Shown: positions 38,724 through 62,710 of the stretch, piece after piece
Numbering within the stretch: position 1 is the stretch's first letter
How the letters are laid out: each line of letters begins with the position of its first letter
From: Blepharisma stoltei ATCC 30299
Lineage: Eukaryota > Protista > Ciliophora
Direction: 5' to 3'
Length of the DNA stretch: 64,000 nucleotides
Assembly: GCA_965603825.1 (NCBI GenBank)
Contig: CBFDEM010000062.1
Span: forward strand, 620,001 to 684,000
Translations under genes and position numbers: made by a program
Notes under the pieces: generated by a model
Database searches by the model: none
What the model saw: the letters and a program-made list of their open reading frames with translations, nothing else
Told to the model about the DNA's origin: nothing

Positions 38724-39251
38724 GGTTATTTTTATAATCAAATCATTGATAAAATTAAATCAAATTTTCTACAGGTTGCATGCAAAATTTAAATTAAATC
38801 TATCAGAAACCTAAAAAAATTCAATTTAATGATGAATTATTAATCATCAAAAAAACCAGGTAAGCCGAATTTTCTCTTAAATCTAGTTTATTATGCAAAG
38901 GATTACTTTAGATTTCAAAGTGAAGACTAGGCATGAATTCTTGAGATGATAGCTTATTTCTTTGATAAAGTGAATTCAAGATTGATAAATTATAGATAAA
39001 ATATATATGATCATCACTTTTATCATTGAAATTTAGCTTGAAGCTCAGCTTATTAAGCTAAGATCAATGTTTTAATTTTATTATTAATCAATCTAATATG
39101 CACTAATTATATCAATTTCTCTAATCAAATCTTAAAAATAATAAAGGTAGACAGCTTAGAATCTATAGTAATAGTATGCACAAGATCAGCATCTCAAAAT
39201 TCGTTTTTAAAAGATCCAAACGCCAAATTTAGTATTTATTTTAAAGTTATT

Positions 39252-41828
39252 ATGAGAATTTCCAAAAAGGATATCTCTTTTGGGTTTTTTATACCAAGTG
39301 CATCAAAGCCAGTTTCTGTAGCAGCACATCCAGTTCATCCTTGACTCTTATTAGCTGAAGAAAATAGAGTAATTTATTTATGAGATTATTTACAAAAATC
39401 AGTCCTTAAGGTATATTCTTCTATTGAGCTTGATGAAGAAGTATTCGGAGGGCCGCTTAGAGATGTCAAATTCTTTGATAAGCATGTGCTCAGATGGAAA
39501 TGGCTAAATAAAAACACAAATATTACAATAGAAGCTTTCCAAGGTAAAGGAGGAAGATGCAATTGAATTGTAGTTGTGATGGAGAATAAAATCGGATTTT
39601 TTGATTATATTTCAGGAGCAACATCAACGATTCTTCAAAGTCAGTTGGATTTTCGCGCTTTGAATTGTGTAGAAATTATAGATTCTAGCTATTTAGCAAT
39701 TGGCTGTGGGGATGGAAGCATAAAAATCTGGGATTGCCAAGAATGGGAGCTTGTGAAAACTTTTCCGAAAGGGACACACACAAGAGGTATTACTAAACTG
39801 CTAAGTTTCTCAAAAAACTTGAGAGAAAGGCCTATTTTGCTTAGTGGGAGCTCAGATGGAATTTTGGCTGTTTGAAATGTGGATACTTGTACAGACGCCC
39901 CAGCATTTAGAATTCCATCAGGCTTGTCAGCAGCTCATAGTGGCTCTATTGCATCTCTATCATTAAATCCTGGATTAATGCAACTAGTCAGCGTTGGTAG
40001 CGAAAAAACACTTGCAATTTGAAATGTTGCGACTTCAACTGAAATTGCAAGATATAAAAATATGAAAGATGGCAATAAAAAGAAAGTCCTTGGCTCTGTT
40101 TTTTCCCAGCATCCTCTATTTCCTCAGTCAATGACTTTTTGCCATTCTGGTGGATCACAAATTTTAGCTATAGACACAACAATGCATAATCTGCCTAAAG
40201 ACCAGAGAGAATTTAATATTTTAATTGATCTTGCAGTTATAATTCCTGGAACTCATAAAATTCTGGAAATCAAAATTCATGAGCTGCAGCCATATTTGTT
40301 ATTTGTGGTAACTCAGAGTGGTGTTTATACTTTATATTATGAAAGATTCACTGTTCCTACATTTGGCTGGTCTCCTTTATTTAATACAAATATCATACCA
40401 GAAAGCATGACTTCATCTGTCCCAAGCCATTTTTTTTATTGTTTTAAAGACGATTGCTTACAAAGCGCAGTTTTTGCTATGAATGAAGACAATACAATGT
40501 CAACTCAGTTCCATAGGCTTGAAACCTCTTCAAGAATAATTGGAAGCTCAATAGAACTTACTGTCTCACCATCAGGGAATTTTCTGGCAGCTTTGTCGAA
40601 GCAGACTGGCTTGTATGATATTTTTTTTATAGGCTCAGAAGGCATTAATCCAATGGGAATTCCTGAGAGAGTAAAATCTGGATATACAACTCAGCTTGTA
40701 TGGCATTCTAAGTATGATAGATTTGCTGTGATCTGCCCTATAAATGAAGACGACACAATTGGCTCTTTTTCTTCTATTGTATCCAAAATTCTTCTTCTTG
40801 TCTATGAAGTTTCCAAAGGCAGAGTATCGCTCATTTATAGGGGTGATGAAATGCCAAACCCTTCTGGAATTTTTGGAGGCAGCTTATTAGGTATCACTTA
40901 TACTATAGAAAATTCTCCCTCAACCTGCTTTTACTCCTGGGAAAGCTTAAAACAGATTGGGGAGCCTTTTCCTGAGCCTCACTACATTTTTTGGTCTGAC
41001 AACTATTGCATTATTGCTTATAAAACAGAATTTTACTTTTACAAAAACTACCCTGAGTTTACCTTTTTGTGAAGGATAAACCATATAATCCGGACAGGGT
41101 TTTGGTGTTATTCAGTGTTTTTTTATTCAACAGATACAGATGTGTATTGGATCTTGCCTTGTTTAAAAACTCCTTTTCTCTTGGCTTCACATGGACTTGA
41201 TATAAACCAAGAATTGAGTTTTCAAAGTGAGGTTGTTAACCTTAAAGAGGATAAAGAAATTTCGGAGCTTTATAGGAAACCTCATGAATGCTGCTCAATT
41301 TTGGCCGTTTTTCAAGGAAGTTTATTGATGGTAAACAGCTCTTATCAATTATTCATTATTCCTCTGACATCTATTTTCTTAAGATTTTGCATGCTTGTAG
41401 GCTCAGGGCTAGCTGCTGAGGCGTTTCCACTTACATTTAAGATGCACGAAATGCTGCAGCCGAAAATTGCTTTGTGCTTAGAAAGTCTAGGACTTCCAGA
41501 GGCTGCTTTAGATTTGCCTTCTTTATCATATAAACAAAAAATCGAAATTTCAATGAAAAATAACATTCCTATAGTGCTTGTGATTTATATTTAGGACAAA
41601 AAAATAATTGAAAATAAACAAATTGTTAAAGAAATGCTGCAAAAATCGAAAGATCCAGAGTTTTTGATGAAATTGTACTCGTTTCTGATTGATAAAGAAT
41701 GCTATGAAGAAGCTCTTTTAGTGGCTTCTGCATTGAAGCAGCCAGATTTAATCTTAAGCACTTTTATCAAAGCCAAAATGCTAGGCAGAGGAGTCATATT
41801 GGCAAAGCGACTAGAAAAACGAGAGTAA
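39252..41828 (+). CDS. WD40 protein resembling TSET/TPLATE complex subunit TWD40-2 (TTRAY)
   Basis: About 853 aa after reading six TGA as Trp and removing intron 41580..41594. Motifs HPVHP-W-LL, GGPLRDVKFFD..V..W, VVMENKIGFFD, QLDFRALNCVE and LLSGSSDGILAV-W. Confidence 0.75.
41580..41594 (+). other. 15-nt spliceosomal intron
   Basis: gtgatttatatttag; removes a TAG and joins to ORF 41634..41828. Confidence 0.82.
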
Positions 41829-42755: not shown

Positions 42756-42837
42756 TTTTGTATATATATATATGAAATTTTAATAATATCCCAATAGTTT
42801 ATTTAATATTGATAAATTAGTTATATTTAAATGCTAT

Positions 42838-42897
42838 AAGAAAAACTCTCCAGCCATCACATAAATTTTTGCAATGACTTTCACTTAGTCTATTCTT
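42838..42897 (-). promoter_or_regulatory. SECIS element in the 3' UTR of the glutathione peroxidase
   Basis: Minus strand reads AAGAAUAGACU-AA-GUGAA-AGUCAUUGC-AAAAAUUUAU-GUGAUGGCU-GGAG-AGUUUUUCUU. This gives helix I, a UGAN/NGAN core, a fully paired 9-bp helix II and an apical loop starting with AAA. Confidence 0.85.
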
Positions 42898-43401
42898 TTA
42901 AAGCAATCTTTCAATGTCTTGCACGATCTTTCTTGGTTCTGTTCTTGGTCCATAATATTGGAATACATTTCCTTGTCTATCAACTAAAAATTTGCCAAAA
43001 TTCCAACCAATTTTACTTCCTCTAAGTCTGCAGCTGAGTCTTAAAAATTTATAGAGATCGCATGCTTCTTTTCCGTTTACCTTAATTTTTGCGAAAACGT
43101 CAAATTTAGCACCGATTCCTCTGACAAAGCTCTTAATTTCTTCATGAGTCCCTGGCTCTTGGCCAAAGAATTGGTTACAAGGGAACGCAAGAACGCTTAA
43201 ACCACGCTCTCTATAGTTGTTATCAAGCTCCATAAGTTGATCATAATTTTTTGTGGTAAGCCCTCACTCACATGCAACATTGACGACCAGCATGACCTTG
43301 TTTTGGTACTTAGACATACTGATATCTTGCCCATCTATGTCTTTCACAACTATCTGGTAGATAGATTGGAAAGGCAAAGGGCCTTTAAGTTTATTGCCCA
43401 T
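42898..43401 (-). CDS. GPX: Selenocysteine-containing glutathione peroxidase (PHGPx/GPX4-like, 167 aa)
   Basis: MGNKL..KDIDG..KVMLVVNVACE-[TGA 43264-43266]-GLTTKNY, AFPCNQFFGQEPG and WNFGKFLVD. The TGA sits at the catalytic Sec/Cys position and a SECIS lies downstream. Confidence 0.93.
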
Positions 43402-59088: not shown

Positions 59089-59371
59089 GTTAATTCAAAT
59101 CTTTTTCATCTGAAAATATCTTTTTTGATTAACTGAAATCCAAAAATTAAATCACAAATTCTATTTCTTTATTTTAGTCGCTTTCTCTATCATAATTTAA
59201 CTATATAAATCAAAATCCTAATAGAAAAAGCCCACTCATTTTATTTAAAGTTTTTTGGGGGTAATTTATTAATAATTTCTAATGATGAAATCCTATAATG
59301 ATCTCTGATTGAAAATACACTTGACCTGATTATCAATAAAATTTCATTTAATTGTATAAAAATTATTAGAA

Positions 59372-62300
59372 ATGTACACTGTAGCAAAGCAGCAAGTCCA
59401 GCTATCTATTGATCCAGAAGCAAAGCATGCAAAAGGCCTGACCCGTATATTTTACACGCTTAATTCTTCCATAAACTCTCAGCCTCAAGCAATAAAATTC
59501 TCAATTTTCGCTAAAGAGCTCCAAGTGAGCAAAATTTGGACAAAAAACAAAACACAAATTCCTTTCCTCTACCCAAATGCGGTCAGCCAGGCTAACATGC
59601 TAGGCGAAGCCTTAGAAAATACCAGAGATTTCAAAGACCTTACAGAAATGCTTTATGTTGCCTGGGATTACGAAAACGAGCTAGGAGGACTTCTGAATTT
59701 CGTGTTGCCAGAAGACGTTGTCCGTGGGAAAAGTGAAATAGCTGTATATATAGAGTACACAATTTCTAGCCCTGCTGGAGGTCTCCGCTTTTATTTCTCA
59801 GAAGGAAAATCCATCATGCTAACCGACTCTTTGCATGAAGCCAAAAGATATTGGATGCCTTGCTATGACACAATCCAAAGCAAATATGATGTAGAGCTAG
59901 AGCTGCAGGTCCCCAAAGGATACTATGCTATTTCTTCAGGAGACTTAACAGGGCTAATAGAAGAAGGAAATAATCATTCTTTTCAGTACAAAATCAGCAC
60001 GTTTGTTGATGCCATTGGGTTCTGTGTAGCCCCTTTTAATATTTTTATACAAGACACCACCCATTCTAGCATAGCTCACTACAGCTTTGAAGAACCTAAC
60101 CAGCAGAATCGCCAAAAAGATTTGAGGTATACCATAAACAACCCTTATTTCTCATATGGGAACATAATTACTTATCTTACAGAAATGATTGGAAGCCAGC
60201 TGCCTTATAAGTCGCACAAGGTCATTTTTTTGCCAGACTTAGGGGAGTCTTTATGTTTTGCAGGGCTTAACATTATTGATGTGAAATACCTTATCAATGA
60301 AACTATGCATGAAGGGATTAATGCAGCTGCAAAAGAACTTATAAGGACTTGTTGTTTTAACTGAATGGGCGCCACATTTCGAATGATGACTTGGGCTGAC
60401 TACTGAATGATTATTGGGCTAAAAGATTATTTAGCTAGAAGCTATATTGGCGACCGACAAGATGGGAACTGGTTGAAATTTGATATCATGAAAAAGGTTA
60501 AGCGGTATTGCTCATATGTGGAAAAAGGCTTAGAAGTCAGGCCGCTTTGCTCTTTATACTTCTCTCATCCTAATGAGTTGAAAACAGACCGCGTTTACAA
60601 GCTAAAAGCAGGGCTGATTTTCCACATGATAGAAAGCAAAGTAGGGAAAGTTCACATAAAAAATGTAATCCAGACACATTTGAATACACGATGTGCTACA
60701 CATGAGCTGATTAAAACCCTAAAAAAGCACTGCAAAGTCAGCTTTAAAGAGTTTGCCAAAACTTGGATATATGGGACTGGAGCACCACTTCTTCAATGTA
60801 AATTTACACACAATAAGAAAAATAATGCACTTGATCTGGAAATCCAACAGACACCACTAATGAACACTTATTTAGAGTCTTTGGCAAATAAGCAGTATGA
60901 AAGCTTAGGAAACTCAAACTATGAAGTCCCTGTGAGGCTAAATTCAATGAGGTTTTACAATGGACCATTAATTATAACGATTTATGAAACTGATGGATAC
61001 GATATAGACAGCTTCCAAAGAGAAATTAATGTAGAAGGAGAACACTTTTATACACAAATTCCTTGTAAAAAAAGGATAAAACGGCCAACCAATACAAAGA
61101 GAAGAGAGGAAACTGAAGAAGAAAAACTTTATAGGATGATGGAATGCCCTGTATTGTGGGTCAGGGTGGATCCAGATTTTCAGATTTTAAGAAAAGTTGA
61201 TATTACACAGAGTGATTTTATGTGGATTGAACAGATGAAAAAGGAGAGAGACGATGTGTTGGCTCAATATGATGCAATTAAAGCTGCGAAAAAAATTACG
61301 TCAGATTATGCGAATGTTTTGAATTTGCTAAATGAAATATTGGAAAATAAAAATTATTATTATAGAGTTAGAACAAGAGCAGCCAAAACGTTAGCTGCCA
61401 TTAGTTACCCCATAAATGCTTATAAAGGGCTAGATTATTTGATTTACTATTTCAAGAAAAACCATTATGAGCATGATTTACTTAAGCCCAACAATTTCAC
61501 TTCTGCAGAGGAATACTTTGTTGACAAAGCAGTTCTGCAGAGTATAATAAAAGTAAATGATATGTCTTTAACTCACAACTATACAAGAATTAAAGTCAAC
61601 TCTAGCTTTGTAGTTGAATTTTTAGCAGAAGTTTTACGAAATAACGACAATTCAACTAATTTTTACGACGACTCACATTGGAAAGCAAATATTTTGCACG
61701 TGATTGCATCAACAACAAACCCTATCTACGTCGACCAAATATTAGAAGAAATTACATGGAACTGCAAGCTAGATCTAGCGCTTCCTTCAAAGCAATATAT
61801 CATTACCACGCAATGTTTAAAAGGATTGCTGAAACTAAATACTCATCATAAAGTATTACTTGACCTAATTTGCCAGTTTTTCTTAGAAAAATTAGACTTC
61901 TACCCTCCAGAAATCCAATCAAAAATCCTCAACTTTTTAATTTCTTACTCTATCAAGCAGCGGGCTTCAGCTAAGCTGATGTTCCAACTTATCCTCAAAA
62001 GAATAAAATCGCACCATGAGCATATCGTCCACTATCTTGGCTCTCTATGATTCATATTAGAAAGCATCAGTTCCTCTACCGCCAACGACTCAATTTTAAC
62101 AGAAATCAGGACCTCTGAAGAAATTCGAACAGTATTATGGGACGTTTGCACTTCTCCTCTTTCCTCTGCAGACCATCGGCTTATGTTTGCTTTCTGAAGC
62201 ATTTATCGCTATTATTTTCCAAGGTCCTGGAAAAATGAAGTCCTTGACCCAGCTTGGCGAGAAAAGCAAGACGCAGACAAAAACAATCAGCAAAGACTAG

Positions 62301-62710
62301 AAGCCATCGACATTTCTAAAGGCACCTGGGAAGACTGGGCACAAGAGATCTTAAATCGTCTGGTAAGGCATGACTATTCAACCCCCTTTTTAGAGCCAGT
62401 TGACTACGTGACAGAAGGCTTATATGATTATCCTGAAATCGTGACCCATCCTATGGATTTTTCCACAATCCAGACTAAACTAAAAAGCCACGAATATTCC
62501 AATTTTTATAACTTTTCTGGAGATGTCAGACTTGTCTTTGATAATTGCAGGAGTTATAACGCTGAAGGCTGCGAGCTCTACCGCTATGCAGAAACTCTAG
62601 ATGAGTGTTTTAGAGTACTATCAAGACCAATAGAAGAGCATTTAGGAAAAGGCCAGCCAGAAGTGAGGTTGAAATTAAGAATATTTGGAAGAGACGTTAA
62701 AGTTGAATAA
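59372..62710 (+). CDS. TAF2: TFIID subunit TAF2 (M1 aminopeptidase-like fold) with C-terminal bromodomain (1112 aa)
   Basis: RYWMPCYD, N-W-MG..WADY-W-M, WIYGTG.P, LWVRVDPD, ERDDVLAQ, YYRVR and KPNNF. Bromodomain PFLEPVD..DYPEIVTHPMDFSTI..LVFDNCRSYN. Four TGA: 60362, 60404, 62048 and 62195. Confidence 0.88.

Follow-up and report, generated by a model that had tools for sequence, protein, structure and literature searches.

UGA carries more than one meaning in several protists. In Condylostoma and Parduczia it specifies Trp, stop and, in conjunction with a SECIS, Sec, with TrxR as the example (Swart et al., 2016; PMC4967479); a tRNA-Sec(UCA) was identified in the genome assembly of C. magnum, and the short distance from the UGA to the SECIS was remarked upon (PMC4967479). 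Amoebophrya, in which UGA means Trp, has candidate selenoproteins together with a lone tRNA-Sec for UGA (Bachvaroff, 2019; PMC6394959), and in Blastocrithidia UGA is read as Trp or Sec, the SelTryp mRNA containing both meanings (2025; PMC12153298). For Euplotes crassus, PMC12153298 cites Turanov et al. (2009) for a UGA that stands for Cys or Sec, with the SECIS selecting Sec. A double meaning of UGA as Trp and Sec is no novelty among related protists; the preliminary description of the locus reported here rightly called the Cys/Sec case of Euplotes documented, but it missed the Trp/Sec precedents in Condylostoma, Parduczia, Amoebophrya and Blastocrithidia.

In Blepharisma, UGA is decoded as Trp by a tRNA-Trp(CCA) whose anticodon stem has 4 bp; the predicted tRNAs with a UCA anticodon are selenocysteine and mitochondrial only, and tRNA-Sec is the sole cytosolic tRNA with an anticodon fully complementary to UGA (bioRxiv 10.1101/2023.10.09.561518). 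A literature search found no paper describing Blepharisma selenoproteins. The window analyzed here, a stretch of 64,000 nt of Blepharisma stoltei ATCC 30299 (positions 620,001 to 684,000 of contig CBFDEM010000062.1, assembly GCA_965603825.1), contains a GPx gene with a TGA at its catalytic residue. With a probability of about 0.88, this is a genuine B. stoltei selenoprotein gene, whose peroxidatic Sec would be encoded by UGA and directed by a SECIS. The interpretation put forward in the preliminary description is supported computationally, with Sec insertion itself a prediction from the sequence.

The Blepharisma locus can be set against the described systems one by one. TrxR of C. magnum, a heterotrich, and of Parduczia sp., a karyorelict, likewise belongs to ciliates in which UGA is Trp or Sec, and has its SECIS near the end of the CDS. 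In these two organisms, however, UGA is also a stop ('triality'), whereas in Blepharisma it is reported to be unambiguously Trp, so that the choice at the GPx TGA, codon 46, is only between Trp and Sec. The Condylostoma and Parduczia TrxR has Sec as the penultimate residue, while the predicted Sec position of the Blepharisma GPx is codon 46, ~380 nt upstream of the SECIS. Blastocrithidia (SelTryp, SelK, SelT) and Amoebophrya (SelT, SelM, SelO) resemble Blepharisma in keeping the Sec machinery under a UGA = Trp code, but they represent unrelated lineages, trypanosomatid and syndinean, respectively, and other selenoprotein families, and the GPx gene differs in having a single TGA. In E. crassus the default Cys is a functional substitute for Sec; the default Trp of Blepharisma cannot replace Sec catalytically. 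Among other heterotrichs, a Sec-GPx has been described for Stentor coeruleus (PMC7409322), and Anigsteinia probably has a GSHPx selenoprotein (bioRxiv 10.1101/2022.04.12.488043), both matching the Blepharisma gene in enzyme family and in Sec position; these organisms use the standard code, so Sec competes there with termination and not with Trp.

The gene and its two informative codons are as follows.
43401..42898, minus strand: GPx CDS, intronless, 167 codons, with ATG at 43401 and TAA at 42900-42898 (from translation)
43266-43264, minus strand: TGA codon 46, the predicted Sec (peroxidatic) codon (from comparison of the catalytic column)
43005-43003, minus strand: TGG, the sole Trp codon of the GPx gene, encoding the catalytic-tetrad Trp of WNF (from codon reading)

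The interval 42838-43401 given earlier does hold the GPx gene, but its lower boundary is the end of the hairpin discussed below; the CDS stops at 42898. Codon 46 lies in the context VNVACE-TGA-GLT, and no other TGA is present in the gene. The 45 residues that precede it match positions 1-31 of the Pfam GSHPx profile (PF00255; 28.3 bits), and the 121 residues that follow it match positions 35-108, most of the domain (84 bits); because the matches end at 31 and resume at 35, the TGA falls into the short gap of the peroxidatic residue. The catalytic tetrad of GPx consists of Sec or Cys, Gln, Trp and Asn (PMC7409322), and it is complete in the window gene, in which the TGA occupies the Cys/Sec column and GQEPG, WNF and the Asn line up with their counterparts in the paralogs. 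That the single TGA sits at the catalytic residue and that the only Trp, in WNF, is written TGG had both been recognized at the outset, and both were borne out. Downstream of the TGA, comparison of the window GPx with an 80%-identical ortholog gives a pN of 0.13 and a pS of 0.78, with synonymous sites saturated; the low pN against a saturated pS argues that translation continues beyond the TGA under purifying selection. The only sign of expression is P0001, an ORF of 97% identity that comes from an assembled transcriptome.

The catalytic column is occupied by either Cys or TGA wherever it was inspected. The B. stoltei genome contains seven full-length GPx genes and one split or partial match, and the column is Cys in all six full-length paralogs of the window gene; two paralogs, located on another contig, are identical to Blepharisma stoltei proteins in NCBI and UniRef. 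Among the top 120 homologs in a metagenomic protein collection, the residue is Cys in 84 and is called 'W' in 11 (84 of the 95 scored being Cys), and about 18 further products are shorter (98-135 aa), most of them starting at or just past the catalytic column. DNA was examined for twelve GPx genes, eleven belonging to a close clade and coming from ten contigs (nine without the window), the twelfth being a more distant Sec-GPx outside that clade (L050). All twelve have TGA at the catalytic column, and no TGG was seen at this column among the GPx genes and homologs checked. In other organisms, the TGA recurs along with the hairpin in ten related GPx genes. A Cys-form relative of the L026 type also exists (P0013).

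The public records read this codon differently. P0271, a public protein of 167 residues, equals the window product except for a W at residue 46, so the deposited annotation reads the GPx TGA as Trp, and, on the reading preferred here, wrongly. A 'W' is recorded at the GPx catalytic residue in P0271, P0003, P0004, P0016, P0033 and seven further homologs. In P0271, as in P0003, P0004, P0016 and P0033 (four of four checked), the DNA has TGA at that 'W'. Since the 'W' calls turn out to be TGA in the checked cases, selenoproteins are systematically mis-annotated where TGA is read as Trp.

Contigs from related organisms place the TGA in different coding contexts. Six TGA codons in genes flanking the GPx of L032, in a tubulin-like gene and in the gene upstream, align exactly to six TGG Trp codons of the syntenic contig L030, which has no TGA-Trp in those genes; judged by this alignment, L032 is a contig that reads TGA as Trp. 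The catalytic TGA of GPx is retained in both. The closest foreign contig, L023 (Logan SRR24908292), encodes a GPx that is 80% identical to that of the window, and has two tandem TGA-containing GPx genes (L023:703-1206 and L023:1360-1863). A separate GUGA SECIS accompanies each of the two; in the upstream copy, a SECIS helix nearly identical to that of the window is combined with a more divergent protein. L024 and L025 contain GPx homologs that are 58% identical and have the same SECIS; their neighbor genes are free of internal TGA, and the upstream ORF of L024 has a TGA ten codons short of its end, which suggests that they come from standard-code relatives, such as other heterotrichs. L048:721-1227, a GPx 66% identical to the window's, has a second in-frame TGA 66 codons past the catalytic one, in a variable column and called W in P0003; on this contig of only 1.3 kb, the second TGA could stand for Trp, so that both meanings would occur in a single mRNA, or for another Sec, or it could stem from a faulty assembly.

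Elsewhere in the window UGA specifies Trp. The long ORFs bounded by TAA/TAG contain about 50 in-frame TGA codons and about 151 TGG codons, which reproduces the count of about 50 Trp-like TGAs made from the sequence at first reading, and TGA is found at conserved Trp positions of two genes.
59360-62707, plus strand: TAF2-like gene with four in-frame TGAs
39057-41591, plus strand: WD-repeat protein gene, a weak match to COPA/B-type beta-propellers, with six in-frame TGAs

In a MAFFT alignment of the TAF2-like protein with 22 homologs, TGA codon 349 corresponds to Trp in 22 of 22 and TGA codon 335 in 14 of 22; the two codons are conserved Trp positions of an M1-peptidase-like motif. In the WD-repeat protein, the signature Trp is written TGA in three of the four WD motifs and TGG in the fourth. 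Farther afield in the genome, TGA and TGG interchange at the same columns of paralogous Rdx-domain proteins. These large Rdx-domain (PF10262) proteins were considered as SelW/T/H-type selenoproteins and rejected: their TGAs align to Trp in paralogs and are therefore Trp, not Sec. The interchange of TGA and TGG Trp codons in the Rdx genes L063 and L067-L071 (G000) is found at the motifs H-x-W-CTNHDE and KL-x-x-x-x-W-P.

The element that would set the GPx TGA apart from these ordinary codons follows the stop codon without a gap.
42897-42835, minus strand: SECIS element, ~63 nt, starting at the first base after TAA (from folding and covariation)
42884-42881, minus strand: 5' SECIS core GUGA (AUGA variant), located 13 nt past the TAA and unchanged in all 11 sequences
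42851-42848, minus strand: 3' SECIS core GGAG, which contributes GA to the tandem sheared G.A pairs, its GAG being unchanged in all 11
42879-42870 with 42861-42852, minus strand: helix II, 10 bp, with both sides changed in nine of the ten pairs
42869-42862, minus strand: apical loop AAAAUUUA, with a conserved AA that is invariant at columns 31-32 of alignment A3
42847-42838, minus strand: 3' arm of helix I, with partners at 42891-42887 and 42897-42893

The hairpin folds at -15.8 kcal/mol (z = -2.8), and none of 200 shuffles folds as well. From its base upward, it consists of a lower helix, an internal loop (5' strand AAGUGAA, 3' strand GGAG), an upper helix of 10 bp and the AAAAUUUA loop. A SECIS-like hairpin straight after the TAA, with a GUGA/GGAG core, an AAA-starting loop and a basal helix, had been proposed in the preliminary description, and the fold agrees with it. 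The ORF of the next gene on the same strand opens only at 42779, which leaves room for a SECIS in the GPx 3' flank, and we infer that the hairpin is part of the GPx transcript.

The canonical eukaryotic SECIS (Rfam SECIS_1, RF00031) and the GPx hairpin share a kink-turn core in which a 5' UGA faces a 3' GA, an upper helix of ~10 bp and an unpaired AA(A) in the apical loop. The GPx element differs in having GUGA in place of AUGA, the commonest form, in its compactness (~63 nt), in beginning right at the stop codon and in being unscored by the Rfam model. Its anatomy marks it as a GUGA-core eukaryotic SECIS.

Comparison of 11 homologous GPx 3' ends (alignment A3) bears on this assignment. In all of them GUGA lies 13-14 nt past the stop and the 3' GAG another 32-34 nt on; the upper helix forms in each of the 11 when folded singly, and the lower helix in nearly all. 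In the alignment, pairs form in 84% of cells, and 13 of the 15 pairs are changed on both sides, with none of 500 shuffles matching the observed values; when the 3' partners are slid as a control, pairing falls to 37-50%. Against the variation in the helices, GUGA, the loop AA and GAG do not change in any of the 11. A seven-sequence subset of the GPx 3' ends gives the same covariation result. Helix I was tested in the register suited to most homologs, and four of its five core-adjacent pairs are changed on both sides; in the minimum-energy fold of the window sequence, helix I is displaced by one position from that register.

The Rfam SECIS models find no match in the window at the gathering threshold and none on the hairpin at E <= 10. 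At E <= 10 they are also silent on the TrxR 3' end described below and on L023, L024, L030, L048 and L050; because the TrxR SECIS and the homologous hairpins are missed as well, the silence is taken as a sensitivity limit of the models for this lineage. A GPx-specific covariance model built from seven GPx SECIS elements (R1) was used for a search of the whole genome, and besides the window's own element it returned no convincing SECIS among the 150 scored of ~34,000 first-look candidates, a sample that amounts to no census. The next R1 matches (22-31 bits) were rejected as SECIS, being without the core or any selenoprotein context.

The preliminary description had proposed a genome search for the Sec machinery, and a search of 41.46 Mb in 64 contigs located most of it. 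A tRNA-Sec(UCA) scores 75.6 bits against a gathering score of 47, is called SeC by ARAGORN and has, per the model, a 9-bp acceptor and a 6-bp D-stem. SepSecS (423 bits) and SelD/SPS (214 bits; a Cys form at the active-site position) are present, as is eEFSec with the eukaryote-specific domains III and IV (the third domain and the C-terminal RIFT domain). A 306-residue L7Ae-family protein is an SBP2 homolog, its best solved relative being the human SBP2 chain 7zjw_B (E = 1.2e-20, across the RNA-binding domain). The PSTK candidate is weak: a second member of the KTI12 family has PSTK as its best match in NCBIfam, at 50.7 bits against a cut-off of 290. The SepSecS gene (L009:1813-2706, G000:C40) has an in-frame TGA of its own, in the context KYVV-TGA-TRIDQK, so that the mRNA of a Sec-synthesis enzyme itself uses a sense UGA, presumably as Trp.

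The genome contains a second gene of the same kind.
L047:283-1896 (G000:C33): large TrxR gene, ending GC-TGA-G-TAG (GCUG)

Its 3' flank has a GUGA...AAA...UGAG hairpin of its own with a mini-stem, a type-2-like GUGA SECIS that begins ~27 nt past the stop, which places the Sec codon only ~33 nt from the SECIS core. All Trp codons in the two SECIS-bearing mRNAs (one in GPx, five in TrxR) are TGG, an outcome that has a chance of ~0.18 over six codons at ~25% TGA usage and is not significant, so that these few codons do not bear out the proposed avoidance of TGA-Trp in SECIS-bearing mRNAs.

In the decoding scheme that would account for these observations, near-cognate Trp-tRNA(CCA) decodes ordinary UGA codons, and the SBP2 homolog would bind the GPx SECIS, whose kink-turn core is formed by the 5' GUGA and the 3' GA. 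The bound protein would recruit eEFSec and Sec-tRNA(UCA) to codon 46, ~380 nt upstream, so that Sec is inserted and not Trp; we infer the action of SBP2 and eEFSec on the hairpin, as well as the success of Sec over Trp. Failure of Sec insertion would lead not to truncation but to a full-length Trp46 enzyme without the peroxidatic residue. The contest had been framed earlier as one between Sec-tRNA and an elongating Trp-tRNA rather than a release factor; the absence of a release factor from it holds, while the competitor is specified by the literature as the near-cognate tRNA-Trp(CCA). That low selenium yields the full-length Trp46 enzyme is plausible.

An alternative close to this scheme is mixed decoding, in which codon 46 receives Sec in some molecules and Trp in others, the proportion depending on selenium supply and on the efficiency of the SECIS, so that an active Sec46 enzyme would exist alongside a full-length inactive Trp46 form. 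It is consistent with the lack of a release factor to outcompete, elongation by tRNA-Trp(CCA), the reader of UGA genome-wide, being the alternative outcome (bioRxiv 10.1101/2023.10.09.561518), and with Euplotes, where UGA is Cys or Sec depending on position, as cited in PMC12153298. The strong conservation of both the TGA and the SECIS shows selection for Sec but is compatible with Trp as a by-product; mixed decoding is judged unlikely.

A simpler alternative would dispense with Sec: the TGA is read as Trp, the product is a dead or repurposed GPx-like protein, and the hairpin is unrelated, serving, e.g., mRNA stability or 3' end formation. This agrees with the default meaning of UGA in the window, with the W46 of the public annotation and with the silence of the Rfam SECIS models, yet no homolog has TGG at the column, which is always Cys or TGA, and L030 keeps TGA there though its neighbor genes write all Trp as TGG. 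The invariance of the GUGA, AA and GA signature amid covarying helices, together with a genome that encodes the Sec machinery (PSTK as a weak candidate) and a GCUG-type TrxR, makes the Trp reading very unlikely. Termination at the TGA, or a decaying pseudogene, has nothing specific in its favor beyond the role of TGA as a stop in the standard code, and it is effectively refuted by the use of TGA as a sense codon here, at invariant Trp columns and about 50 times in frame in the long ORFs of the window, and by the strong purifying selection on the 121 post-TGA codons, which bear most of the GSHPx domain.

With SECIS-directed Sec at codon 46 as the preferred reading, what is new here is this GPx gene, the compact GUGA SECIS at a fixed offset of 13-14 nt across the GPx clade, and the mis-annotation of residue 46 as Trp. 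The GUGA SECIS architecture is common to relatives with and without UGA = Trp, which suggests that it predates the code change. More speculatively, and with rather more against it than for it in our estimate, the GPx pool may be a selenium-dependent mixture of Sec46 and inactive Trp46 forms, and the compact GUGA SECIS may be a lineage adaptation that tunes the competition of Sec with a sense tRNA. If true, such a regime would be mechanistically unlike the classical competition of Sec with a release factor.

The GPx gene provides a clean and well-supported additional example of one codon with two amino acids, Trp by default and Sec with a SECIS, in a culturable ciliate that has a telomere-to-telomere-scale macronuclear assembly. 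As UGA is not a stop in Blepharisma, GPx and TrxR together permit a direct test of SECIS, SBP2 and eEFSec in competition with an elongating tRNA instead of a release factor.
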